A DNA stretch of 64,000 nt. Origin: Ascidiella aspersa (lineage: Eukaryota). The position numbers were made by a program, and so were the translations under genes. The stretch is taken from the NCBI GenBank assembly GCA_963924565.1, contig OZ004608.1, forward strand, positions 9,238,001 to 9,302,000, read 5' to 3'. Shown piece by piece: positions 1 through 48,400 of this stretch. Position 1 is the stretch's first letter. The number at the start of each line of letters is the position of its first letter. The notes beneath the pieces are model-generated. The model saw nothing but the letters and a program-made list of their open reading frames with translations, did not search any database and was not told where the DNA came from.

Positions 1-335
1 ATACGTTTGGAAATATATGGTTTATTTATTTAGAGAAGGCTTGTAAACAAAAGTTCCCTTAAAATTGTATCTTTTCATATCCGTTTAAGTTAAGTTGTAC
101 TTATCTCGAAAAATAACTGAGCTAATCGAGAATACACGATTTTATTGTTTCATTGCCTAAAATTTTCAATGACACTTAATTGTAAAGCGAGCTGTTTTAA
201 AATACAGTCATATGTGCCATCCATCGTGATGATAAAATATGCAAGGGTGTTGACATTTTTGACAAGGCGATACTTGCAGACCAAATAAAGCGTAAAACCG
301 CTAAATTAGTTAAACCAACTTATTTGCTCCATCAG

Positions 336-1412
336 ATATGCCGTTGTATTCGCCCAGCCGTGGATTCCAGGGATCACCGTTGGCCAGCTCTCGCGCTGGA
401 GCGGTTGGTAAGAACGCGCGGCAGCAGCACGGCGCCAATGTGGGCAAACTGAGGGGGCCCGTAGGGGGAGTCCCGATCAACGGGGACACGCGCCCGGGCT
501 TTATCCAGATCTCGCACCCGCTCCACATCCCGCAACAGCAGCGTCCCTCTTCCGCGGAGGCAGGCAAGAGGAACAAGATCTACGACAGCTACATGAGAGA
601 GCTGAGCACACGCGGGGAGCCGAGGACCATTAGAAGAAAAGGAGCATCTTCCGCAACCGAATCGGCTCCTCGTCCTTCCGGAGTCATCGTTAAGAGCCTT
701 GGTGGTTCCTCGGGCAAAAACCTTCCCAACCACCAGGGATACAACCGGAGCCAAACTTCAAAGAGCTCCTTTGGGTTTTCGGCGCAGGCCGGCCGCCGTT
801 CAGGCCTGGCCATCGCCGCCGACGCCCCGGCGCACCCGAGCGTGGTCAGCAGCGCCAAGTCGGCTGGCCCGATGAAGCTCGGTCTCCAGGGCGACACGGT
901 GCGCCTCAACCTGGACAAAAACATCCACGTCATCTACCGCGACCTCGGTCTTCTGAAGAAGAACGGCGGGAACGTATCGCTCCCCTCCTCGCCCAAGCAG
1001 TCCAGCATTATGACGTACGACGAGGTACGCGCAGCCAATGGAGGCTCGAGGCCCATGAGTAAGCGAAGCGGGGAGAGCAGGTCCCGGGCCGCGTCGGCAA
1101 AGTCTGCTTTCGAGGACGCTGCGTCCAGTCATTCGGTTGTCACCATCCCGACAGCCGATGTCCTACCAGAGAAGCCCGACTCGTCTGCCGTCCAGTTCGA
1201 CGAAGATCGGCCAGATCGGGAACAAAAAGAAGCTACTGATCACCAGGAAATCCAGGATCCAATAGAGGACGTGGATATGAAGCAAGTCGATGCTACTACT
1301 GAGAGACCTACATCCGCCAAGGCGGTTCGAGTATCGAAGAATTTGAACGAGGTTGCCGACTCGGGAACTCAGTACAATCCGCCGGACCCCGAACCCGGAG
1401 CACAGCTTGCTG
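336..1412 (+). CDS. Large coding exon of an unrecognised low-complexity/disordered protein (S/G/A/R/P-rich, several RPxSA-like motifs). Internal exon, or first exon if ATG 338 is the start.
   Basis: 363-aa ORF 338-1429 with GC-rich codon usage against an AT-rich background. Acceptor tttgctccatcag ends at 335 and donor G|GTAAGT is at 1412/1413. Exon length is 1077 nt, phase 1-1. Confidence 0.8.
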
Positions 1413-1742
1413 GTAAGTATGCAAACTAAACTGGCGTTTCTCTTTCATGGCAACATTTATAGCACATGCCAGAATGAAATTAATTATCCAGCGTATTTGT
1501 CTGGAACACTTGACTGAAAATACTGCTTCAGGTCAAATTTGGAATCGTTGAATAAGGATAGCTTATATCTAAGCCTAACAATCTTGGCTAATTCGAGTAT
1601 CACGTAGTCATATTGCTGGATAATTAGTTTAAATCTGGCTTAAAGTAATAAAATCAATTACCTTAATTTAACCTTGCTGTCTCTTAATTATTGCAAGTCT
1701 GACAATTGCCGAACATTCGCATTTGCTTGGATACCCTATTTC

Positions 1743-7137: not shown

Positions 7138-8345
7138 CTAAAGGACGGCGTCAGACGATCGCAGATTGTACTTGGAGGAGCGCACGAAGTTACTATGATT
7201 GCAGTTCCAGTCAGTAACCAGGGAACCACCATTGGGGTCAGGATTCAGACCGGACTTCGCTCCCAAGGAGCAGCTGGAGTACATCGAGTCCGGAGGCTCG
7301 GATGCGGAAAGTTCGTCCTCGTCTATGCTCCAGACCAAGTGGTGGTTGCCACTCGGGAGGAGCGAAGGATGAAGATCGTCCTCGAACCCAGAGTCCCGGT
7401 TGCGGAGCTTGGATGGATCAGAAGCGCCGTTGCAAGAGGCGTGGTTGATGTTGCTGTTCGAGAAGTTCCTGGAACTTATTTCGTTTCCTTTCGCTTCGGC
7501 ACTTCTTCGTCGCCTGCGTGTGATTTCGGCTGCGGCCACCAGGATCCCGGTGGAGGAGCTTTCGGAAGAGGATGCGGAAGTCCGCTCTTCAGGAGCATGG
7601 CCGCAGTCCGAGCAACCAGTGGACTCCGAAGCAGCTCCTTGGTCAACGGCACCATGATTTGCGGCGGTTTTATCTAAAGTGGTAATTTTCGCTTCTTCAG
7701 ATGTGGAGAATCGCACGTGGTGTCCTCCGCTTGATTCTCCGGAGACGCTGGAGTGATCGCTCACAACGACGCAGATCGATTTAGGACGCTGCTCGGGAGC
7801 GTTTTCCGCCGCGTCGGTGAGGACCAATTCCTGCTTCTCGGCGTTCTGGTAGAAGACCTCGTCTCTGGTCCGGGAGCGGCTCTTTCGCGGCGAAGAGGCA
7901 GCGGAGGAGGAGGGAGGAAGAGCGGCGATCTTCCCTTGGCCGTGGAAGAGCGTGCTGATCTTGGAGATGTCCGGAAGACTGATGCTGCGGCGCACGGAGC
8001 AGGTCATGTTCCGGGCGAGGACCGACATGACGGAGGCGAGGGACCTCCGTTCCACATCCTCACTCACCTCCGCGTCGGCTCTCTTCCGTGCGCACCACCA
8101 GGAGGCGAGGTTATTGCCGCGAGGAGAGAGTATCATGGATCGGCGAAGAGCCATCTTGTACTCGTCGCTCACTGAAGTCGGATGTTGGGATGTGGTGGAA
8201 CCATCCGGAGTTGTGCAGTTGGACGCGGGAGCCGAGTCTAGGCTGTCTGAGGAGAGGTGGTGGACGGTGTGTGCCGGGGATGAGAGGTTCAGCGACATTC
8301 CTTGGTGGTTTGGGGAGTGCGGGTGAGGAGCCTGGTTGAACGTGG
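7138..8345 (-). CDS. TESK: TESK-like terminal exon 11 (Ser-rich disordered tail with RSISLP)
   Basis: ttttatcag acceptor; the phase-1 join is in frame with the 386-aa ORF 8298-7138; stop TAG. Confidence 0.87.
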
Positions 8346-11300
8346 CTGATAAAATAGTAAATGCTTCACGTTAAAAATAGGTTTACATTGCTAAATTTCA
8401 ATAGTTTTATTTATAATGTTCTGGCAGTAAATAGAACTGATATTTTTGCGCTATGTCCAGCCCGTGTAAAAATCCGCTTTCAAACACTTTACCAGACTGA
8501 AAAACGTACAAATTGATCTAAATCAGATTTTAAAGACACTAGTAAATTTGGTTTGGTGAAATTAGGTTAAAAAAGTATTAGGCAAGTATTCCTAACCTAT
8601 ATAGGGTCTGTCAGCAGGCGTTATGTTATAATATGAAATTGACAATTAAATATTATTAACAAGTTGCGTTTGTTTTATACTATAGCTTACAAATCTGCAG
8701 TTTAAAAAGGTCGCCGCTTACCAAAAACTACAAAATCGTTGCGCGTTAAATTTTCAATGAACTTTAAAAGCCAGCTGGCCCAAGAAAAATATTTTGAAAT
8801 TTAATATTTCGGTTGACATGAGGGCGTGGTCGCAATTAAACAAGCAGTTTAAAACTTTATTTTAAAACTTCCATAAAGCGTAAAAGCTGTTTAACACAAA
8901 TACGCCATCACGGCTTAATCGTTGCGCGATAAATTTTCAGTGAACTTTGAAAGCCAGCTAGTCAAAAATTGATAAGAGGTTTTATTTGGGAATTTCATAT
9001 CTTTGATCGACTAAACAAGCAATTATAAAATTTTGTTTAAAATTTTCCATTGAGCGTAAAAGATATATTTTCAATGAACTCTGAAAGCCAGCTAGTCCAG
9101 GACTGATAAGTGGTTTTATTAGAGAAATTACATATAGCGTAAAACCAGTGTAACACAAATACGCCAACTTACCGAAAACCGACTTGGGCCTGTGTTTGCG
9201 TCTTGGCAGTGACCTGCTTCCCTCAGTGAACTGACAGCTCTTCAGATGCTCGCTGGTGGCGATGTCAAAGGTCATCTCGAGCAGGGCAAGGCTCGGTTCG
9301 TCTACCAGCTTCATACGCCCACCATTCAAATGCTGGAAAGATGAACGAAGGGTTAGGTTTGTGCGTTATGGGGGCCAGATGGCATGATTTGACAGAAGAG
9401 TTTTTGTCAGTTTTTATGGACTGTTTGAAAGCACCCGTCTCCCTTACCCAGACACACATTTTGGCCTTTTGCACGGCCAATTTACATGTCCCCTTCCTCG
9501 GTAAAGAGCATACTGTTATAGTAATTTTTACAAATGTATGTCAGAAAATAGATGAAACAAATGTGTACCAGAAAAAAATTTACACGTACAAAATTTGCAA
9601 AACCTAAAATTCGTATAAAAATCTCCGTTGTGGATTGTGGAACTGTGGCTAAGTTTATCTATAGACCAAATCCGGATCGGGTGTTACGCCCCTAAATAAC
9701 ATATCGATCTCGCAAGCTTTGTTTTCTTAAGTTGCTTGGCTAATTAAAAAGTCAATCCCGATTGGCTTGCAATGTATATGTTTGTTCTTTCAACGTGATA
9801 TTAAGTAAAGACCCGAGCATATAGCTCACCAGGGCGGCCTTAAACGATGTAATAGCAACCGTTTTTGGAATTTTTATCTAAGAATTTATATTGAATGACA
9901 TGTTAGTGAATAACTTGGGCATTCCAAATACTAAACAATTGTGAAAATCCCAGTTAGGCCAACGCAGAAGTGGTACAAATGTCGGTATGGTATGCGATTT
10001 TTCTTTAAAGCGATGTGAACCACAATTTAGTTTTTTTTTAATTATCCGGACGTGATTTGCCGTGTTTAAAATCAACCAGTGCTAGTTTTTAGGACGCTGA
10101 TTTTATGTTAGAAGCAGACCAGTAATGAATCAAACTTCTTAGTGCATTAAATTAGAAAAATGATTTAGTCGTACGGCTAGCCTACACTAGCACTAGCCTT
10201 CTGCAAAACAGAAATGGTTTGGCCGCTTTTGTTAAATAGAGCAAGATTGCAGCAGTAGCAGCAGCACACATGACGTCAAGCACGTTGTTACGTCATCGCT
10301 GTAGCTCAGCGTGAACGTCACGTGACACAACATCCGCTCAGGGAGGGGATGGGCCATTACACCACATTCAAGAAATGTATAAAAAATAAAAAAAACTCTA
10401 ATCGGGGCCTTTGTTCGTGCAATGATAGCCTAGGGTGAAAGAACAGTTTTGTAGATGACGAATTCGACGAGATCACACGAAGAGTTGTCGGTTAATTGAG
10501 GTCAACTGCTGGTGGTTTCGAAACGATACAGTTAGTTGAGCAAGTGATTTTTGAACTTGCAGAACCGCCATTGTACGATATACCAGGTCCCTCCAATCTT
10601 TTACTCAGTCATCGCGTCATTTTAAAAAAAAATCTCTCCGCGGGTCACAACGGCTAGAAAAAATAAGAGTTTCGCGAGACGTATTTTGTCTTTTATTTTG
10701 TTATTATAGAAAAAAAAATGCAAGATGTCAAAATAATTTATTGTATTGTAGGTTGAGCAGCCTTGTGATATAGTCTTTGCTTTGCGAAAAACCGATCAGT
10801 AACTCGAATTATTTTTCTAAAACACAAAAATGCATAGAAATATACTTGAGCATTTAATAGAAAAAGAATAAAAAAAAAAGAAAAAAAAGAATGGAAACCC
10901 AAACCAACGCGCAAGAAATCCAACACGTACCAAGGTGTTACCACGCAAGGCTGGCGAGTTAAATGTTGAATAGAGACCGGGCGAGTTTAGAATGATTCAG
11001 AAGACGACCGGAAGCTAGCTGGTAAACACGGGAGCATCCGGACTGACAGCTGGCAGTTTGGTCGGGCCGTTTTTTTTCTATCAATTCTACTGCTTTTATG
11101 GACGCCGAGTGCTCTTGGCTTGTCATCGTGCGAAATAAGTTGGGCCATTTCTGCGGAGGATTTCTTTCGTTGCATAACTAAATGTAAGACTTTGATGCTA
11201 ATGGGATATAAAAGCCTGATTGCAAAAGGGTTTTAATTTTTGACTTAAAACCAGAAAGGATGGCCATAGGAGAATGTGATTAAAAGTTAACCCGTCCGCG

Positions 11301-26300: not shown

Positions 26301-29300
26301 TGACGTCTACTTTTATTGTTTTACTAACCGCCAATCGTTATTGCGTGAACGGTCATATACGCCAGAGTTTCAGTCAGTCAGTCGGTAGTTCATGATATTG
26401 TGGTTGGGTGACTACAAGAGCCGCACGTTCACGTCAAAACATATCACTTTCTCGTAATCGATCACGAAAAGCTAAACCGAGGCTGGCTTGGCTTGGCGGC
26501 AGAATCAACAACACTGCGCTTCACTGGAAGCCGAATCTACAGCATTCCACGCATGGAGCGCACGCACAAAGACATCAAAGGGACAAGTTTACAAAACCGT
26601 TTTGAACGGCACTTTCCATAGGTCGGTTCTTCTTGGGCCGTATTTCAGACCTCGCCCATAATCGAAAGCCGCTACAAAAGAAGCCATGGCTTCTTTCTTT
26701 TAGGGCCATTTTCCAACGCTTGGCCATTCTCAACGGTCGAATAACTCTGCCATATACGATGGCCGCTAAAATGTGCCAAGGCTCCCGTTTTCAGCCATAG
26801 TTCAGGACCACCTTGCCAATTTTAAAAGCACTACAACCTGTTTTAAGGTTGAGGTATTTCTTTTTTAATAAGCTGTCAGACATTATCCAAAGCCAAGCTG
26901 ATTTCGTTGCGGACTATATGACGTAAAGCAAAAGGCATCGGCTGCCTTTGAAGAGGTTAGGTTAAGTATGTAATAAAACATTCGAAGAATGTGACAGGGA
27001 GGTGGCGACATGCGACATCTTGTCTTTGCTCGTGTGACAAGAACGCGACATGAGCGCGCGACACAAGGCTACACACAACACAAAATGCTGCTGCTGCTGC
27101 TGCCTTACGGTCGCAATTTTAGAAGGCGGCGAATCGCACGACTAGTCCGTGACACGCCCGACGTGCATTTACTCTCGTTCGCGCGATTACACAAAAGCAT
27201 CGAAATATCGCATTACATAATTGGCTTTGGCGTGCATTTTCGCGCGGAAGATGAAACGTACGCGTATTAATACAACAGGCGCATTTTGGTGCGATTTCGT
27301 CATATCTAAAACGCTAAAATGCAACGTTGGGTGACCAGTTTTGGCCTTGTAGAAAAAGGGTGGGATTTCTGGGGCAACAGGCGAGGAATTGCTCATTGAG
27401 TATTCTCGGAGATTTGAAACCTCGCAGGCCTTATATAGCTAATTTAACTGGTATTTTAAAGCCTTGCAATTCTCCTCGACGGGCAAATACGCCAACCTGT
27501 CAACAATGAACCGCATATAAGAATGGCGGCCGGAGCAATATTTGCTCAAAGGTTGGCCAAAAGATAACACACCAAGCCCCCCTAGGAAAGCGGTAACCGG
27601 GTAAATATGCTTTGTCACTCGGGTGTGGGTGGTATTTTCCATTCTACGACGCGGGAGGGGGGGTTACAATAGCTCAACGGTCAAGTAGACAATCACGAGA
27701 AAAGCGAATGGTACGCACGCGACAAAACGGAATTCCTTATGACTTTAAAGCTTCGGGCGCCATAATGTTTGCGGTTCCGGCTAAGTCCAGTTTACATAGC
27801 AAAGGCCCCTCTTTTAAGCCTATTTCTAACCCTTCACCTAGTTTTCAGTGTTTTCACAACCACTTCAAAACCAGTAGGCCGACACAACTTTGCCATAAAA
27901 TTAGTGCGTAAGAAAAGAGAGCTGTCTGATTTTGAAGTGACTGAATGACTATGCGAGCAGCTAATAAATACCGAATCGTAATAAACACCGAATCCAGCGG
28001 TTCTCAACCTTTTGTAGTTAATCCCACTTAAAAGAGGCGCTTGATAACCGAGGCCATCTGCTTGTCGTTTGTTCCCGTGTCTGGCATTTTTTAGGTGCTT
28101 TGATGTCTAATATGCTTATCGTCACAATAGCATAGGAAAGCGCAAACAAAAAAATTAGGTAAAAACTATGCTTTAAACGCAATTTGTGTGAAAACTGTTC
28201 TCGGGTTTTTAGAATAACTCCCAAGTAAAGTCACCATAAAAATTACCTAACTTACTTTCAAAGTAACCGTAATGCTGTTAAATTATTTAAGGCCATAAGT
28301 AGCAAGAGAATTCAAGCCAGAAATAAAATCAAAGTCAAAGAAAATTTTTATTAACCCATTAAGTAGAAATTTGGCCCTTGGAAATAGGTAAATCCCCCAA
28401 CCAGTTGACAAACTGAAAGCTAAACTTATGCGACTCAACAAATCAAAAATTTCAGGTAGAAAAAAAACTAGCGCTTACACTTTCGTTGTAGGGCTTTCCG
28501 TGGAGGACTTCGGGAGCCATGATGTATGGGGTCCCTACCATCGAGAGTCGAGACTCCTCCTCAGCGGATGCAGGAATCTTCTCCGCCAGTCCGAGATCGG
28601 CCACTAGGGCGCGGTATCGCTTCTTGGCAGCTCCTCCGGGACCCTTGAGGTTGCGAGAAGTGGAGGTGGTGATGCGGATCAGACAGTTCTGATGGCAGAA
28701 AAATTGCCCGTTTGAATACGATGCGAACGGATTAAAGGTTTGGGATTCGATGCATCGACTGCGGTTTGTTTTATATTGTTTTGTGCAAAGTTTACTGAAT
28801 CGAGTGACTATAGCGATTACAGAAGTTTTGAGACGACATGTTGATGGCGTAAAACGCCAAATCATTATGATATGCGTTTAAAGTAATAGTAAATAGAAAA
28901 GGGCTTGCAAATAATCGGCCTTTTTGTTGAAACAAAAAAACATGCAGCAAAACGACATATTCGTATGGTTTTCCTAAAATACTCTAACTAATATTTCCCA
29001 CGAGAAAATCGCTCAAGTTTTATGGCCCATATTGAACTGTTTTTAACCTGCTGTTTCACGTATATACTTAGCTCAAGCCAGAATGCGAATAGTTCGTGAC
29101 TTAGCAAAGGAAATGGCACAACATGGCCTCCAGCACAGCTCAGTAAAATTATTGGCATAATAATTCATTTCAAAACCGTTTCGGAAATATAGGAACAGCC
29201 AGGTAAGCCAGTCAATCGGTACTATGCGGTCAGGTTTATCAAATTACGGGGAAATTAGTCGGAAAAGCCGCAAACCACATCATACCTTGGCACTAAGGTC

Positions 29301-32300
29301 CCTGTGGAAAACGCCGAGCGAATGCAAGTAGTGCAGGCCTCTGGCTATATCGAGGGCAATCTGCACACGCTCCTTCCAAGAGAGACTGACTTTCCCCTTT
29401 GAAACGAGCTGCTCCAAGTCTCCGCCGTTGATGAACTGTTGTTTACGCAAGGGAAAATCAGATTTATGGTTTGGTATGGTTTTGAGGCATAAAACCAATA
29501 AAAGTTGTATAGTTTTTTAAGGTTATAAGCAATTAAGCCGTACAAAAATAGTCAGCGATATGTGAACGTTGTAGCTATTTTTGTTTTACTTTTAACATTG
29601 TGAAGTAACGATAGTAGAAAATGGCCAACGTATTACGCCAGTTGCAATTTCAAAATTCATGTTAACCGGCTAACGGGTGGGAAAAACACAAACTTGTACT
29701 TATAAATTAAAGTAAGGTTCACCAAACTACGGCCAGTGGGGTTAAATATGTCGCCAAGCGGCTTATTGCTCTACTCAACATAAAATACAGTATACAGATC
29801 AAATGTTTGTCTTTTTAACTTAAACAGTCTAATGGTAGAAAGTGGTTTCGCGCAGTGCTTATTTTAAGAAGGTCATTTCCTCCAGTTGTAAATGACGTGA
29901 AACGCTATGAATCAATTCCCTTTATAACACCTTTACTAAACTTAGCCGCATTGCAATGAACACAATGACTTTTCAAATCGAGAATATGTCACAAGTATTA
30001 GTGGTTGATTGGTAGCAACTCAACAGTCGCCGCTGTAGCCATTAATCAGCAGTGAATATATTCAGCGCTTAATAATGAATTGATTTTCAATATTTAATTT
30101 ACAAATATAAAAAATACCTCAGTAAGGCTGTGCAGTTGTCCATCGTCCACGCACACCCCTTTAAACCTGTGTAAAAAATCGTATATATTGAACAACAGCA
30201 AGCAAGCAGTTATGTGATGTTCGGGCATTTGACAATATCAAAACACACCAGAGTGCTTGGCGTGCTTTGAGTGCGCGTTTGAAGGCGCCAGGTCTGATAG
30301 GAAATGAGGTAAGAGGTGTTAGAGAACTATCAAGGAAGTGGTGGGCCCAGGTGGGGAAAATGCCCAGTTGAACACACACATGCACAAGGCACGTATTTAG
30401 CTCCGAACATTAAGCCGAAAAACGCGTTTCCAGTTATAAATTTCAAAAAAACATCGCCAACGTATCTATCGTTGCTCGTAACATCAAAGGCAGTGTTTCC
30501 CAAACTCGTCAGATCATATATATAAACTTCACGCCACCCACGTTTGAGAACAACAAACAAAACATTTCGTGTTGTCTCCTTATGCACACAAATGGCGACA
30601 TGATGTACAGCTCGAATGGGGAAATTGCGTTTGCCGTAGTTTTACCATTTACATATCGAAATTTATAAGTGTTTATACAGATGTCGCACTTGTAAAAAAA
30701 TGATATGGGCGCAATACATCTAATTAAAGGAACTCTGAGCTAGGGTACATTAACGTTACCAAACAAACAAATTACCAGTCGAAAATTTAACAAAAAACAA
30801 GCAAAAATCGCATATGTACACTTGCGGGCAACATCTAGAGTGCATTAACGCTATCAGTCGGTAACTGTGTGCGGTTATCAAGCTCTTGTAGCGTACCTAA
30901 TGGAATGCAAGGCTTAGGCAACGAAGCCGGGTCCGTTTAACATCGCAAAGGGAGCTCCAGCAATCAATGAGCGGTGCAAAGGGGATCGATAAAACAAGCT
31001 CGTAAGAAGCGACGCTTACTTGAGAATGTTGGGATGCGAGAGGCGGTTCATGAGCTGCACCTCGCGCAGGATGTTCATCTTGCTGTTGGTGTCCTTGTTA
31101 CGTTTCAGCACCAGCACCTTGCCGGTCTGCTTGTGGGTCACCTGGGGAAGCAAATAACAAATTGCGCTGATGAATTGCGAACGGGTTGAATCAGGTTCGT
31201 TGCCTTCCGCCCTATAGCGCGCGTGAGCACGACCCATTAGTGCATATTTAACGTTGCAGCGCACTTTGCAGCAGTAATGAATGCAATGCACGTCGATTGA
31301 AAGCCGCCCCGCCCCCCTTGACTTGGCTGTTTGAATGCGCACGTTACAGTACATGTACCGAATGTAAAATTTCTCTTACATGTACATTACTTCTATTGCA
31401 ACTGCAAGGCGTTCAAACGGTGTTCTGACAAAGGATTTGATACACCCCAATTAGGGATTTTACATAATAATATCGGGGGATCGTAGCCGATACTTGATGC
31501 CAAGTGATAGTATCGGTATTTGTCCGATACTAGGGTGGTATCGCTTCCGATCCTATACCAAATTAAAATAGGAATTTTTCACATAATTTACGATATAACT
31601 GACCCATTTTCACTCCAAAAGGTATTTTTTTAGATATAGCATATTAACAGTTAAAGTAACTAAATGTCCCATATATAAAGCAACAGTTTGTCAGGAACAC
31701 GAACAACATTACATTTGCACGTTTAAATTTGACTAATTTTCATTTCACCTTAGTAATGGCGTCATTCAGCAGCGGATCGGCGGTTTGCTCAAAACATCGG
31801 GTATCGTATCGGCACAAAATGCCAAGTATCGGACAAACGGACATCCCAAGCGGTGATATTTACCCAATATTTTATGGTCAATGTTACCCCTCATAGGCAC
31901 GTTTTTGTACGATTCAATAAAAAAACTATATTCATCCTGTTATTTGGTTTCCAATTTACGCAATACATTGAAGAAGAATAAAAACAAACCTTTTCAGTAT
32001 ACGCTGTTTCAAGTTTGTGCAGGTCGCATTTTGGCTGCAAGGCACCAATGTCTTAAAATAACGCGCTTGTAGAATCGGACGTTCGTCGGGTCGCAACTTT
32101 TCAACTCTGATTCGATGCGAATGGGTCGATTACCGATTCGGGGCTGTAAATCATCCTGGGAGCGCGAAAGTACGTCCGCTGCTTAATCTATACGTGTCAG
32201 CAGAGGTCGAATTTACAAGGGAAAGTGAGTGTGTGAGTTCGTCCCAACGATGACAAGGTAGGCAAACTCGAAAACAATAATAGTGGCACCTTCTATGAAG

Positions 32301-40322: not shown

Positions 40323-43300
40323 TTAACTGGTAACTTGCGGTCAACTATTCCCTACCCCTATCCCTATCCATGCTCAAAAAGTATACTTTTTATTATATAT
40401 TTCCACCTTTAGTCGATTCTTTTAAACCCTAAAAAACGGTCCACGGAAACATTTTAAGTTACAAGGGTTCTTGCAAGTCTCACGGGGACACAAATGTATA
40501 TTCTTAGTGCCAGATATGCCTCGATCAAGACCTTGCCTCCAAGAGATGTGGGAATATGATTTGATTGCCACACGAATACGTCTCCTCGTTTATTGTTGAG
40601 TTGTAGAGTATGCACTGCGTTAATTCCAAGATTGTCTATTTCGCGTGTTGAAATTCACTGAAGGAAAGGGTAGCAAAATTGTCGAACGCTTCTTGGTGGT
40701 GATCTTCTCCTTTGAGGTGATCTGGATCTGGAAAAAGTATAAAGAGTACATAAAAAGAAGGAAGTATATACCAGAAGTTGTGAATTTAGTGTAGGTGATA
40801 TAACTATCGCTATAATCATAGAGGAAGACTGTAATTGCGTGTTAGTCCTACACATTTGTAGGCCCCCTTTAAACTTAAAAAAAAATATTCTAAAAAGTAC
40901 GCTACCAGGATCCCCAAATTCACTAGGCAGCACAAAGTTGTCTCGCACATGTATCCAAACAAGCCATTTAAATAATGACAGTTGTTTTCATTTGAGCGAA
41001 AGTGATAACAAAATAGACTTTTTTATGGCTATAGCGAAGGTGCGTAAAACCTCTTTACGGGGGCCAACGAAAAACTTGTTTGTAACACTAATATCAAACA
41101 AATACCGCGAAACATAGAATGTTATCCTGGCTAAAAAATGTAGATTGTAAAAAACTCTGTCTCTAGGTGGCGATAAAACGCTGGGATAGTATAACTAGAG
41201 AAGCGTTCATATATTTTGAAACAACATTTAAAAAGCTTGGTTTTTTTTAACTGTTGAGTCGGAATTGGGCGCGGCTGAAAGACTTTGAAGCGTAGATGAG
41301 ATTACATGTGCTAAAGATTTTAGTTATTAGGAGTGCAAATATTCTGGGTACACTCGTCTAATATACCAGAATTTTGCCAACTGTATTTGTCCAGCATATA
41401 GAAGGCAGGCAGAACAGCAAAACAGTTGGGCACAACGCCCCAAAGCTAGGCTTAAGCTCGAAGGTGTTCAAGAACGAATTCTCCCTCGATGCCAATTGGC
41501 AATTGGGCGACTGCTTTGCACAAACAGGGCAAATCGCGGTGGCGGCAACGACGGTTCGAAGTTGCCTTTCAACAACACGCACTGACATCATTTCCACATT
41601 GCTTCCTGCCCGCGGCCGCAAAACGAAGCGCGGCCGCAGCAGAAAACGCGATCCTTCATAAAACGTGCATTTGAGGTGTGACGGGCCGCGCCCAACATCG
41701 AGCGGCAAGCAGTGGCAGTCAGTAGACTAGCTTCTGGCTGGTTGCAAGCGGATTGCGGGCGGGTCTGCGTCGCTCGCTAAGCGGTAGCTTTGCTGCTTGA
41801 TTCTTCGCTTGTAAGATGGGCGGGGCAACTAGGCAAGATGAGCGCATTGGTCATGTCCGGAAGGATAGGAGAGCGGAAAGATAACAGCGAACTTTCAACT
41901 GCGAACAGAAAGAAAGGTTGAGGTCGAAGGTTTTAATCATACGAGTTCGCACAGCAGGAAAAGAACTGGTTTTAGCGTTTGACGTCTTGTTGTGGGTTGA
42001 CTCACATATAGACTGGTGTTTTTAATTGAAGTGAACACGGCCGCGAAGATCGATCAACGCACTTACAGAGGCAAGGCGACTGGATCGAAAAGCGCGGATA
42101 AATAGGTGCTGTATTGTCGTGTTTAGAGTACCGGCGATTAGAGGCCGTCGTGCTTTCCCTCGCTTTTCTTGCTGCTTCTCAGACATTCCGCTCGTCGACG
42201 CAACGATATTTACTAAATAGCCCCGGGGAAAACGGAACGGCCTAGCTCGACGGAGAAAACGTTTGCCGCGCCGCAGTCGTTCACCACTGGCAAAAAGTCG
42301 CTCTTTTGCTGCGGGAAGAGCCTTGTTGGGTGCTGCAACGCTAAGCGATTCGCTCGCTGGCTGCAGTTTAAGTAGAAAGGGTGTTAAAGTGAAACGGCAG
42401 CGCGAATAAATGCAATCCTAATCGGATTTGAACAGTGTAATGCTAACGCTGCGATCACGCGCCGCCGATGAGCTAATGCTGCCAAACTTGGGCGTTAGAA
42501 ATGGCTGTGCTAGGCTGGGCGGCCGACCGACTGCCAGCAGCGACAGTGATTTACCAGGAAAATGAGTGCGAAGCGACAGCTATCCGTGAAAACGTCATTT
42601 TAGGCACTGCAGCGCGCGCGGGTCCATAAATCCACAGAAAATGCGGGTTAAAGAGTATGTGCCGTTATCGCACTTGGTTAGATGGTGACAAGCGCGGCGG
42701 TTTTACAGCCGTTGGCGACTGTAGTGCCGCGTACAGCTCGAAGGAACAATAAAACAGAGTCTGTCAGCCATTCAGTAACTACTTAGGATCGGTCAATGGC
42801 GCTTCAAGAAGGAGCGAAAGTTCTCTCCGATAGCGACAGCACAGCTAGCAGCAGTGGTGAAGCCCAGCGCACCCAGAGCACGCAGTTATTAATATCATCC
42901 GGAACCCAAAAGCCTCAGGAAACGGGCGCTGTCCGTGGCTGTGTATTTGCTGCTGTATCGCCGATTTGCAGTAATTACCAGTCGACTGGGGAGTAGGTAG
43001 GCTTAAGGTCGTCGGCGCAATCTCGGGCAGCCTAGGTTGGTTTCTTTGAGAAAGCTCGCGTTTAGAGTGTGCTTTTCAGTTGCGCCAGGTCGGCGGGAAT
43101 TTATTTCAGACATGGCGGGTCCCTGGGGAGTGGTTCCGCCTCGAAAGCAGCGGCTCCGGCGCTAAAGGGCTCGCATCGCGCGTCGATCCCGGCCGCGCCA
43201 CTGAATATTTCATAAGCGAGGCGATGCGAACAGATTGTGTAATGAGGGAAATTAACGCACGTACAGCTCGCCTGGCCACTATAGTTAAGCAAGCGCACGG

Positions 43301-43886
43301 GCGTGCTGATACCTGACGCGCCACTTAAACCGCCGGCCAATCGAATTCCGGCACAGAAGGATGCGCGGCCACCACTTGAGCCCCAATGGACTCTAGAGAT
43401 AGCTGCCTTGTGGAGACGGCTGGACACAGCGCAGCGCTCGGCCATCAGAGTGTCTTGTTTCTTGTGTTTCAAAGCGCCAGGAATGCGGTCTGTTGTGCCC
43501 CGGCCCTGCGCTGGCTTTCAGCCACTCACGATTAAAGAAAGCGTTTCATGTTTTAGCATCACGCCTTGCCTAAGCGGTTCATCAAGGGTTTTTTTCTTGA
43601 GGGCATGTGCCCAAGTCAATTAGACGCACGACGTCAGGCAAGTTACAGTTTTGTTAGGGCGATAGGCTGTTTACTCTGCAACTTTAACATACACTGTATT
43701 GATTTCTGCAGGTCTATTTTATACTTTAAACTTGTTGCTGCGTTCTACGGCCATTGGATTTTAAAACAACCAAACAACAGTCTCGCAAGTCCGGAATCTA
43801 CTAAATAAATCGTCAACAAAAGGACAAAGCTCCAAAGATCAAGCAAAGATCCAAAGACTCGCCCGAAAAAAATCAAATAGATCGCA

Positions 43887-44159
43887 ATGGGTTCAATCTG
43901 CGGCAAGGAAGCAGCTAAGACGGAAGCGAAGGCAGAAAAGAAGCAAGAAGAGGAAGCAGCAGCGGCCGGAGGAGAGGGAGAACAGGCCAAGGAGGAAGCA
44001 GGAGCTGAGGCGAGCCAGGAGGCAAATGGAAAAGCGGAGACGGAACAGGAAGCAGCTCCCGAGGGCGGCGAACAACAAGAGGAGAATGCCGAAAAACTGT
44101 CGAGCGAAATTGTGAACGACGCGGTGGCTGAGGCCAACGAGGTGCAACAGGAAAGTTAG
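43887..44159 (+). CDS. 90-aa acidic microprotein; predicted N-myristoylated/palmitoylated small AKAP-like protein (smAKAP/AKAP7alpha-like architecture)
   Basis: Purine-rich coding bias, with GCAATGG start context after an A-rich leader. Candidate acceptor tttctgcag ends at 43711. T-rich 3'UTR-like sequence follows, with AATAAA at 45433. N-terminus MGSICGK; C-terminal helix AEKLSSEIVNDAVAEA. Confidence 0.8.
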   Translation: MGSICGKEAAKTEAKAEKKQEEEAAAAGGEGEQAKEEAGAEASQEANGKAETEQEAAPEGGEQQEENAEKLSSEIVNDAVAEANEVQQES

Positions 44160-45432
44160 ACTTTTTTGTCGCCGCTGCGAAAACCTATTTTTGCGAAACG
44201 AAAACCAACTATTTTCCTACCCAATTATCTTTTGCCAACATTCCCGCGAGAGGTTTACCGCATATAATACAGTCGCTATATTATTTTAATACTATTATGA
44301 TGATTATGCTACAATGACACGCTAGTGCTTTCTCTTACGTTTTTTTTAACTGTAGCGTTTTCAAGTCATTTTATTTTTTGCGGCGTCATAACGGCGGGCG
44401 AGATTTTTACCTTGTTTTCTGTCTCGTATACCGTGAAGCAGTATTTTCTCCCCATGTGTCTGTGTGGAGCCCGCGAGTCGCCTCTGTAATTCAACGGTGG
44501 AAACCAGTTCGGCGCGTGGCCCAGTCGACATTCGCACGTTTTTTAGCCTAAAGTTTTTTTTTTTCCATATTCTAATCGTGGTTGCGCCCCTAGCACTAGC
44601 CTTGCGTAGTACAAGCGTATGTCATACGAAGCAAGTCGTTCTCAATTGACGATTACTGATAGCGGCCCTTCATATTTTGCGAAAGGCTCGAGGCCCTCTT
44701 CAGCGTTGTTGTGGCGTCGAAGCTGGCTCAGCAACCGCAGTTTACCTCGCAAGCTGACTCGCGCGCCCAGCAGCCGAATTTGGTGTAGAGAAGCCGCCCG
44801 GGCGACCTCGCCCAAAAGCGATGACGTCACTCGAAAGCGGCACAATTAATTGCTTTGCGCGCGGGGCGGCGAAGCGTGACGACTGTGCTGTTCCAAACGC
44901 TGCTATACTGTTTCGGTGAAAGTGCTCGCGCTTATGCACGAATCCCGGCACCTCGAAACCGGACCAATGCGTTTTCCGGGCGCTTTTTCTTTGGCCATTG
45001 CGCGAAATGCATTGCGCCCTAGAAAAAAGAAGGTAGAGCGACTGCAAATCGTGGAGCGTGTGTGAGCATCGCGCGCTTTCCCACTTGCGAGCGTTTGGCC
45101 CAAAACGAGTTTTCGCGAGCGCGCGCAGTGTTGTGTGTGTGCGTGCGCGTGTGACGCCGAATCGCCGAATGAACGCGCGCCCTTTGTCTCTTTTTTTCAC
45201 GTGTGTTTGTCGTACCGTCATGTACTACTACTTATTACTACAACTAATAGTACTACAGCTTCCCCCGTTTACTTCTCCCGTTTGCTACAACGACATTATG
45301 TTGTGCCCCCTCCTCCTCGCGCAGATTCACCCCCCGCACTAATACTCACAAGTGTATGACGTAATAATAGTGACACCGACCGATAACGCGCGCTGTTTAG
45401 AACATTATGTGCATGTTGTTATTTTCAGAACA

Positions 45433-45438
45433 AATAAA
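45433..45438 (+). terminator. Candidate polyadenylation signal of the microprotein gene
   Basis: AATAAA followed by GT/T-rich sequence (tgtggtcttgtattttt) where the CpG-rich UTR-like stretch ends. Confidence 0.5.
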
Positions 45439-48400
45439 ATTTGACACGACAATACATAAAATATGTGGTCTTGTATTTTTTATTTAGATGCAAGTGCTGC
45501 GTAAAATAGTTAGTACAAGTTTTGTTGAGATTACACATGTTTTTGCCAATCACATCAGAGAAGATTTCTTAAATTGATTCCTTTCTTAAATTGAACTAAT
45601 GACACGTAAAAATAGCAAAGGAAGTATTCAGTCTAAGATGTAACTTACGCAAATGCATAGCACCACTTGCGCAGTAATTTTTGATTCTCATGTGCAATTG
45701 CAGAATCATCTATATCAAGATTTGGCCATAAACCTTAATAAAGTAGGAAAATAAAAAGCTATGTAATTAAAATTTGTAATTCATTCAGAAATTTACAAAC
45801 TCGAGTTGGAAATATTCATACTGGAACACTGGTCAAGGGCTACAAGAGATTATAAAGGATACGTGACTATTCGCATGCCGCGTAAAACCACGTCAATAGA
45901 GAAGGCCATTCCAACACCCACCAGCAGATTATGGCCAAGTGGTCGTATCACGTTGGCATACAACTAAACAACAAACGTACGCGTTTGTGCACGTCGCACA
46001 AAAATAACGAGAATCCAGGCCGATGGTGGACTGTATTCAAGTTTAGTAACTTTCTACCGTACGCAGTGCTTGACAGCGGGCATACTCACGCAGCAAAGAA
46101 AAGAAGACCTTATGACATGGTGACCTGCTTTCCAGCAACGGACAAAATTCCGATGCAACGGATAAGAACGAGAGTGGTGCCAAATGCCCTGGGGGCGAGC
46201 GCTGGTCGGGCTTCAATGCTTCCAATAGAAAACGTAAGCCGACACCGGCGAGCCGATATTGCCTTGGCGCTGATATACGACTGTGCTTGAAACAGGAAAT
46301 CCTGGGTGGCAGACAACAAAGCGTCGTTGGCTGTTGAACTTGTGGGTATTACGCTTGTTGAAAGCTTTTTTTCAGACAATTTTTTTGAAATTATGACTAT
46401 TATCTTGGCGCGTGAAAATCATCGGACAAATGCGTTCTGGCTTTCTTCTGGCCAAGTTTGGGGATAATAAGTCCTAACGTGACGTTGTAAAAATAAATCA
46501 CGATGTCAAGTCACGTTTCGTCCAACTAACTTGCCTTGTTTGGGCTGCTGTGGGAATACTGAATAATGTTCAAGGCGGGCTGCACAGTCAAGGTCCCTCG
46601 CCAGCTTTAATTTAGGTTAGTTTGGAGCTTGATAAATTAATTGCACAAGACATCGTTCTTGCTAAGGCATAAATCAACTTGACACTAAAAAATCAACAGT
46701 AATTTATTGCAAATCGTGTATATAGCAGTTATATACGAATCTTACGGTTAGCTTATATTTCAGATTTTTAAGATGTCCAGTGTAAAATTGTCGTCTGGTT
46801 ATTTTTTCTTTTTTTAACTATGCCAAAACTCGTTACATTTTTAATATATATTAGCTCATGTTGAGATATTTTAGCAGTATAAGCAAGCTGTGCGTCTCAT
46901 GGCATTTTGCTAACATTTAATCCTTGAATGAATGTATTTATGTTTGATTTCCGTTGCATATATTTGCATATATTTTGGCATAAAAACTTAAAAAACGGCT
47001 TGCAATCAAAACTTTTGGATAACGTTTTTTTGAAATACTAAACATAAACTGTATTTTGAACATTTCTTGCCTACATTAGCAGCGCTTCGGAGCCGAAGGG
47101 GCTACGTTATCGTTGTTGTTATCTCAATCGGCAATCTTAACCGCTTTTAAGCGGACTGATTTAACGCATAGAATTTGCAGCGTTCCGTTTCTTGCGGAGT
47201 CTTGTCGAAAAGTCGGTTGCAAGGTTGAGATTTTGATCGCAGCATGCTGTTGTTGTTGTTACTTGACTAGATCAACCCAAAAAATCACAGGGGCCCCGCG
47301 CGTTAAGGAGTTATTTTTTTCTCTGTCTAGAACATGCCCACACAATTTAGGACGATACAAAGGTCGCATTTAAACATATTTTTCGTGTACCCCACACTAA
47401 CGTTGCTACGTGAATACAAGACGATAAGAAAAAACAATGAAAAAAATGCCCCAAACGGACACCTTTTCAAACCCGAAAAACAGCCGCATGTTGTGCAGCC
47501 CTAATTAAGAAATCACCCTTTTCGCGCATACGCATTCGGGCTAGACCGCACACAGCTTGCTCTTGTTGACATTCGTTTGGTGGAAACGCTGCTTCGAAAG
47601 CTGTAAGCTGTTGCTGCCGCCGCTCATCAATCAGCCAAAGCGCCGACAACGGCAGGGACGTCCTGATAGTTGCTGATATCATTGCGTTGCGCTAAGGCAA
47701 AGTCCGTTTCGGCCTCATCCCGTCTGTGCGTCAGCTGTGTGCGCAAATTGAATTACGCGCGCGGACCAAAAAAGGTCCGGCGCCTTATGCGAACCGTATT
47801 TGACCGCGAATGAAAAACTGGTCAAGCCGTGTTAGTGATTTTTTCTTAAACGCCTGACCTAGCATGTGGATTCACATTGCAAAACAATCGGCTACACAAG
47901 AGTTTTGAAGTATTTGTTTATGTAAAACAATCAAGGATGAAATTTCGCCTACTTTGGTGCAGTATTTGAACATAAAAAGTCGCTTTGAAACAGAATGAAA
48001 CAGCCCACTGGGCTTACGTCATACCATAATATGTTTGACTTGTAAAAGAATCGCGGGATTTTAGAATTGAAACCCGTAGCACACCGTCAATAAATGCCAC
48101 ATGTTGTCAGTACTTAAATGCACAGATGTTGAAAAGGTGCACAAATTACTCACCGGTCATCTGGGAACGCGTCGCGGCGGCCATAAAACCTGTGCAGTTT
48201 ACAAGCGCAGGTCGTGTGAAAAGCCGGTTTAGAAGGCGCCGTCCTTTTGCGAACGTATAGAGTGATTTACGGTGCGACGAAAACCGGATCTGGGATACTT
48301 TGTCGGTGCGTTGTAAAAGAAAGTATTTGCCTTTGAGCTGCTTTTGACTGAATTAAATCGAAACCTATAGTATGTTTTAACTCGGAGGCCTTATTTTTTC

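Follow-up and report, generated by a model that had tools for sequence, protein, structure and literature searches.

A conserved microprotein of the sea squirt Ascidiella aspersa as a candidate membrane-tethered, smAKAP-like anchor of protein kinase A

We report a real, expressed and conserved protein-coding gene of the sea squirt (tunicate) Ascidiella aspersa at 43887..44159 of the window, by which we mean the whole stretch of 64,000 nt that was analysed (contig OZ004608.1, positions 9,238,001 to 9,302,000). With modest confidence, we favour the view that its 90-aa product is a membrane-tethered, lipid-anchored minimal anchor of the AKAP type. Judged from its sequence, the protein is a predicted PKA anchor and the first candidate relative of smAKAP outside the vertebrates.

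The coding region is an ATG ORF on the forward strand whose 90 aa, with the stop codon included, fill the interval exactly. The first-pass annotation had read it as MGSICGK, a spacer rich in E/A/G/Q/K, the segment ...AEKLSSEIVNDAVAEA... and a short tail, and our reading agreed with it in every part. The ORF occurs as a single copy in the 308-Mb, 75-contig genome. Its length alone is little proof of coding, because the DNA of the locus is rich in purines and several frames are open on each strand. The 5' UTR contains no ATG, so that the ORF starts at the first AUG of the transcript, and a TAG in the same frame, at 43878-43880, precedes this ATG by two codons; together, these features indicate that Gly2 is the true second residue of the protein. 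The start codon has a G at both -3 and +4, and no ATG ORF of the transcript is longer than this 90-codon frame, the second longest having 76 codons.

The first-pass annotation had proposed RNA support as a check of the gene, and stranded RNA-seq indeed covered approximately 43712-45436 on the strand of the ORF. These data came from one raw-read stranded run of the same species mapped over 41300-47200; reads resembling human sequence had been dropped from it, for which reason dips in depth are not findings. The first mate was on the minus strand in all 122 mapped reads (122/122), which in the usual stranded libraries corresponds to RNA of the plus strand; 55 of the 122 reads fit the region only in part, and no cis-splice joint was reported over 41300-47200. 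Depth rose from 0 at 43708 to 3 at 43721 and 18 at 43785, averaged about 10 over the 5' UTR, ranged from 5 to 16 up to the bin 45240-45436 and was approximately 0 thereafter. The 5' edge of the RNA lies directly after a canonical splice acceptor (ttgatttctgcag/G; ttctgcag/G), with its AG at 43710-11, and its 3' edge falls on the polyadenylation signal AATAAA at 45434-45439, which occurs nowhere else in the region, indicating a polyadenylated transcript with a mature exon of approximately 1744 nt (~1.74 kb). Short-leader trans-splicing is common in tunicates. The 5' end of the exon could result from a trans-spliced leader or from cis-splicing to an unseen 5' exon, and trans-splicing is a reasonable guess.

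Polymorphism was compared between the ORF and its own UTRs in three runs. The 273-nt ORF had 0 variants, with about 3 to 5 expected in it by chance, whereas the UTRs carried 27 SNPs or indels over 1471 nt. This comparison is only suggestive of coding constraint; as a test it is weak, since the first 170 nt of the ORF coincide with a dip in RNA depth. Specifically, depth was 1.5 over 43861-44057, between bins of 10-11; filtering of reads from this GA-rich stretch, or an allele of the spacer polymorphic in length in the sequenced animal, could produce such a dip.

Several other signals were recorded at the locus. One contig of run X3 extends unspliced from 41692 to 45334 with a mean depth of 167, as compared with 2-3 in neighbouring contigs, and the raw RNA run shows slight depth on the same strand at 42876-43269. 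The signal over 41692-43711 may stem from precursor RNA that is still unspliced (outron) or from a further exon upstream in the microprotein gene. A 209-nt contig from run X4, which carries a second organism label and has a depth of 4.5, matches 44006-44154 without mismatch, has 58 unrelated letters ahead of 44006 and contains a GA insertion after 44129 that would shift the frame after residue 81. An error of assembly, a rare allele or a rearranged copy could explain this contig. The features of the gene are listed in Table 1.

Table 1. Coordinates in the window of the microprotein gene and of the parts of its product
Feature	Position	Strand	Basis
Splice acceptor AG (ttgatttctgcag/G)	43710..43711	+	Sequence, onset of RNA depth
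5' UTR, 175 nt, ATG-free	43712..43886	+	Sequence, RNA-seq
CDS, 90-aa microprotein	43887..44159	+	ORF, single copy, homologue P0001
Residues 1-7, MGSICGK, predicted acylation start	43887..43907	+	7/7 in P0001, PROSITE pattern
Residues 8-65, acidic disordered spacer without aromatics	43908..44081	+	Alignment, AF2 pLDDT ~50
Residues 66-83, ENAEKLSSEIVNDAVAEA, AKAP-type amphipathic helix core	44082..44135	+	15/18 in P0001, AF2, peptide alignments
AF2 helix, residues 61-89	44067-44153	+	AF2
3' UTR, ~1.3 kb, ending past AATAAA 45434-45439	44160..45455	+	RNA depth, sequence

A full HMMER scan of 1.84 billion protein representatives returned a sole relative, P0001, an unnamed protein of 91 aa (E 5.3e-4) whose match spans both proteins from end to end; in pairwise BLASTP against the window protein, its E value was 1e-18. 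P0001 is encoded by one Logan contig of 1908 nt, a length close to that of the microprotein transcript. Word-index protein searches with the protein alone and with a two-sequence profile found nothing beyond P0001, and the exact window protein was absent from a collection of 15 billion proteins. Likewise, no relative was found in metagenome scans with the profile or with a back-translated pattern of the helix, the search of the ESM Atlas gave no usable match, and PDB sequence searches with the whole protein, the profile and the helix produced one chance match only (V-ATPase subunit E, E 0.35). The family is known from two members, the window protein and P0001.

The first-pass annotation had predicted conserved ends around a variable spacer, and the alignment of the two homologues bore this out: identity was 7/7 in the N-terminal MGSICGK, 15/18 in the helix segment (residues 66-83), 29 of 69 alignment columns in the spacer, which also contains five in-frame indels, and 1/7 in the tail. 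The helix segments share A-x-K-[LM]-SSEIVNDAVAEA, in which SSEIVNDAVAEA is an unbroken run of 12 identities. When the identity vector was shuffled, a run of at least 12 appeared in 0.9% of trials, and such a run together with seven identical first positions in 14 of 100,000. The combination of conserved ends and diverged spacer indicates that the parts under selection are the N-terminus and the helix, and that the acidic region is not. Within the diverged spacer, both homologues retain a QEANG island (residues 44-48, 44016-44030), which may be a short linear motif.

The protein has a net charge of -17, zero aromatic residues and one Cys, and all its large hydrophobic residues beyond residue 5 are within 71-86. 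In both homologues, Gly2 conforms to the PROSITE N-myristoylation pattern G-{EDRKHPFYW}-x(2)-[STAGCN]-{P}; Gly2 is therefore a predicted N-myristoylation site, with Cys5 as a candidate palmitoylation site and a basic residue, Lys7, close by. AlphaFold2, run on the two-sequence alignment, modelled a single confident helix over residues 61-89 (block pLDDT 75-89) and disorder elsewhere (pLDDT ~50). The hydrophobic face of the helix consists of L71, I75, V76, A79, V80 and A83. The docking register of AKAP helices, which are amphipathic and comprise 14-18 residues, is described by the degenerate pattern [AVLISE]xx[AVLIF][AVLI]xx[AVLI][AVLIF]xx[AVLISE], which begins at residue 72 of the window protein and at residue 73 of P0001. 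By itself, this motif is weak evidence, because shuffling the A/E-rich protein reproduces it in 14.5% of cases, and the hydrophobic moment of the helix is unremarkable, being exceeded in 28% of shuffles; what lends the motif weight is its conservation.

Among Pfam families, the best match of the window protein was SmAKAP (PF15127; E 0.019, 16.4 bits), aligning residues 1-82 with positions 1-79 of the 97 in the model; the other entry was a meaningless DUF (E 8). SmAKAP was also the sole Pfam entry for P0001 (E 0.077, 14.5 bits; residues 12-86 on model positions 8-82). Scores of 16.4 and 14.5 bits lie well below the gathering cut-off of 27 bits for membership in PF15127, and the two matches are not independent because both proteins are homologous to each other. 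Halves of the protein submitted alone had no Pfam match. A search of the whole genome with the SmAKAP model gave no match, even at the locus itself, and is hence uninformative. The motif models RII_binding_1 and AKAP7_RIRII_bdg, which the first-pass annotation had suggested scanning, were absent at E<=10 for both homologues, in scans whose HMMER filters may drop weak matches.

For a protein of a tunicate, smAKAP is the pertinent comparison. The closest resemblance in layout is also to smAKAP, which has approximately 90-95 aa, a Met-Gly start with a nearby Cys, an acidic middle and one helix in its C-terminal third. The two homologues share the acylation motif with a nearby Cys and have 90 and 91 aa, and the AF2 model of the window protein contains the single helix 61-89. 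In smAKAP, the N-terminal Met-Gly and nearby Cys serve myristoyl and palmitoyl anchoring (PMC13025221). The helix of smAKAP, with which the first-pass annotation had compared the segment, aligned in the register given there when we used the published sequence of the human smAKAP AKB peptide, whose L65P/L70P mutant is dead for binding (bioRxiv 10.1101/2023.12.10.570836). Residues 62-85 are identical to it at 7 of 24 positions (E66, A68, L71, S72, I75, D78 and A79), with conservative matches at K70/R, E74/D, V76/L and V80/L, giving the common core A-x-[KR]-L-S-x-[DE]-I-[LV]-x-D-A-[LV]. The proline-sensitive L65 and L70 of smAKAP align with L71 and V76, and its Ser66, whose phosphorylation by PKA disrupts binding (PMC13025221; PMC12203939), aligns with S72, placing K70-L-S72 at the position of R64-L-S66. 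P0001 has M, V and S at the positions of L71, V76 and S72, and in both homologues the residue at -2 of the S72 equivalent is basic.

Conversely, the marks of RI selectivity are missing from the two tunicate-type sequences' equivalents of helix positions 1 and 17. RI-selective anchors have F/Y-A at positions 1-2 of the helix (97.7% conserved), RI binding is lost when YA61 of smAKAP is changed to LL, and a Trp occupies position 17 without exception in 219 orthologues of smAKAP (PMC12083921). The corresponding residues are N67-A68 and A83-N84 in the window protein and S-A and A-S in P0001; thus the window protein has Asn instead of Tyr/Phe at position 1 and Ala instead of Trp at position 17, and of the RI determinants it keeps only the Ala of position 2. 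It further differs from smAKAP in having its Cys at position 5 and not 3, and in its host, the smAKAP family having so far been reported from vertebrates only. A survey placed the origin of RI-selective anchors, smAKAP included, at the base of the vertebrates (PMC12083921). As its score falls short of the Pfam threshold and it lacks the RI determinants, the protein is not assignable to the smAKAP family. Because the position-1 aromatic and the position-17 Trp are missing, binding to RII, or to both RI and RII, would be expected, rather than to RI only.

The helix also resembles peptides other than smAKAP. AKAP-IS, which is optimised for RII, is identical to residues 68-83 at 6 of 16 positions (E, L, I, V, A and A) in the same register (PMC11408856). 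As AKAP-IS is a synthetic peptide optimised in silico and not a family, this likeness shows only a fit to the general consensus for PKA docking, and it follows that the helix would be a good generic AKAP helix, not one specific to smAKAP. AKAP18alpha/AKAP15, the short isoform of AKAP7, has 81 aa, an N-terminal myristate with two palmitates, and an RII-binding helix (...LVRLSKRLVENAV...). This helix resembles KLSSEIVNDAV of the window protein; it lies close behind the lipid anchor in AKAP18alpha, whereas here a 58-residue acidic spacer intervenes. The likeness to GAP-43, BASP1 and MARCKS put forward in the first-pass annotation held for composition, that is, an N-terminal acylation motif followed by disordered, Glu/Ala/Lys-rich sequence without aromatics, but not for family membership, as there was no Pfam match at E<=10. 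Those three proteins carry a basic effector or calmodulin-binding domain, whereas the window protein has no basic cluster beyond K15-K19; conversely, they lack the conserved C-terminal helix found here.

Potential partners were sought with the Pfam RIIa model, which identified six loci in the genome. One (L003) is an exon of PKA RII, with the docking domains of RIIalpha/beta as its best PDB matches and 84% identity to an RII fragment from a shark in the part aligned by BLASTP; another (L006) is an exon of PKA RI, with RIbeta/alpha as best PDB matches and 18 of 21 aligned residues matching human RIbeta. Both docking domains are split by introns in this genome. We also observed a SPA17-like locus with a complete RIIa domain in one exon (L002:1459-1674, contig C1, ~14676441; 55 bits) and a homologue of TPGS1 in a single exon of 263 codons (L005:1411-2199, contig C6, ~10307276; Pfam TPGS1_C, E 1e-42); this homologue carries at its N-terminus a weak docking domain of the RIIa type and is another possible receptor for an AKAP helix. 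The remaining two loci are small RIIa-domain exons. For complex prediction, two copies of the docking domain of shark RII (P0002, residues 1-46), the only complete RII N-terminus returned by the search, were combined with residues 55-90 of the window protein. The three scores obtained with shark RII were 0.34, 0.32 and 0.32 against a mark of 0.34, and those of the controls 0.01-0.05; these values tip the balance in neither direction as regards binding.

From these features, we propose how an anchor of this kind might work. Met1 would be removed, Gly2 N-myristoylated and Cys5 palmitoylated, fixing the N-terminus to the membrane. According to its composition and the AF2 model, the disordered acidic spacer of ~58 residues could act as a flexible tether. 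The face of helix 66-83 formed by L71, I75, V76, A79, V80 and A83 would dock in the groove of the D/D four-helix bundle of the PKA R dimer, and docking on the R-subunit dimer would hold PKA at the membrane. More speculatively, phosphorylation of S72 might switch binding off, an idea suggested by the exact coincidence of K70-L-S72 with R64-L-S66 of smAKAP.

This proposal has to be weighed against other readings of the same gene. The ORF could be a chance frame in a purine-rich non-coding RNA or UTR from which no protein is made; the several frames open on both strands, the low complexity of the protein, its low Atlas recognition score and the dip in RNA depth over 43861-44057 (though such dips are not findings) would suit this, but it appears very improbable, given that a homologue of nearly the same length has stayed in frame across five indels and has identical ends, that the first AUG is in good context and opens the longest ORF of the transcript, and that variants number 0 in the ORF but 27 over the 1471 nt of its own UTRs. 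A protein of the BASP1/GAP-43/MARCKS type would act through its disordered region, in lipid/PIP2 organisation or in condensates, with the helix as a cap or oligomerisation element. The E/A/K/Q-rich, aromatic-free, disordered sequence and the N-terminal acylation motif agree with such a role; we nevertheless consider it improbable, as none of the BASP1, GAP-43 and MARCKS families of Pfam matched at E<=10, there is no basic effector domain, and the spacer is the least conserved part whereas the helix is nearly invariant.

A closer competitor accepts the acidic, lipid-anchored microprotein and its helix but gives the latter another partner, either a non-PKA protein of the RIIa/DPY-30 fold or an unrelated protein that binds amphipathic helices; SPA17-like, ropporin-like or TPGS1-type proteins, for example in cilia or sperm flagella, are possible candidates. 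AKAP-type helices can also dock non-PKA proteins with the RIIa fold, of which at least four loci exist here besides RI and RII, and the generic nature of the motif (14.5% of shuffles), the absence of the RI-specific marks of smAKAP and the below-threshold SmAKAP match all leave room for such a partner. We regard it as rather unlikely, however, for the register and key residues of the helix match two independent PKA-binding peptides (the AKB of smAKAP and AKAP-IS), the architecture of acylated start, acidic spacer and helix in the last third of ~90 aa is that of smAKAP, and neither homologue comes close to any Pfam family other than SmAKAP. A membrane-tethered PKA anchor is therefore the reading that we prefer.

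Whether such an anchor would share ancestry with smAKAP is a separate matter. True homology, rather than independent invention, is possible because the weak match runs from end to end, size and layout are the same, and tunicates are the sister group of vertebrates; we give it serious consideration while holding it at somewhat less than even confidence. Still more tentatively, the protein may be a true tunicate orthologue of smAKAP with an ancestral, generic helix for RII or dual binding, to which the RI clamps (Tyr/Phe at position 1, Trp at position 17) were added later in the vertebrate stem. Synteny with vertebrate C2orf88 (smAKAP, AKAP19) was uninformative, the sole identifiable neighbour being a protein-kinase gene on the opposite strand.

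The exons of this kinase gene occupy 7141-38173 of the minus strand, and the exon at 29283-29516 (-) matches Pfam PK_Tyr_Ser-Thr (E 9e-10); by eye, the gene looks like one of the TESK/LIM-kinase type. It is arranged head to head with the microprotein exon, with ~5.5 kb between the end of its first coding exon and the start of the latter. Two long open frames, 314-1426 (+) of 371 codons and 7141-8370 (-) of 410 codons, have no Pfam match; the second probably represents the kinase gene's large C-terminal exon.

AKAPs place PKA within the cell. If our preferred reading is right and the microprotein anchors PKA at membranes, the design of a lipid-anchored mini-AKAP would either go back to the last ancestor that tunicates share with vertebrates or have evolved twice. 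The case also illustrates how conserved proteins of low complexity and fewer than 100 aa escape standard searches. Were the protein a true homologue of smAKAP, this would contradict the published vertebrate origin and imply that RI selectivity was added onto an older generic helix; were it a true orthologue, it would offer a natural 'before' state for the evolution of PKA isotype selectivity. As a smAKAP-like protein without the RI-selectivity residues, it would in addition be a natural test case for the proposed determinants of selectivity.
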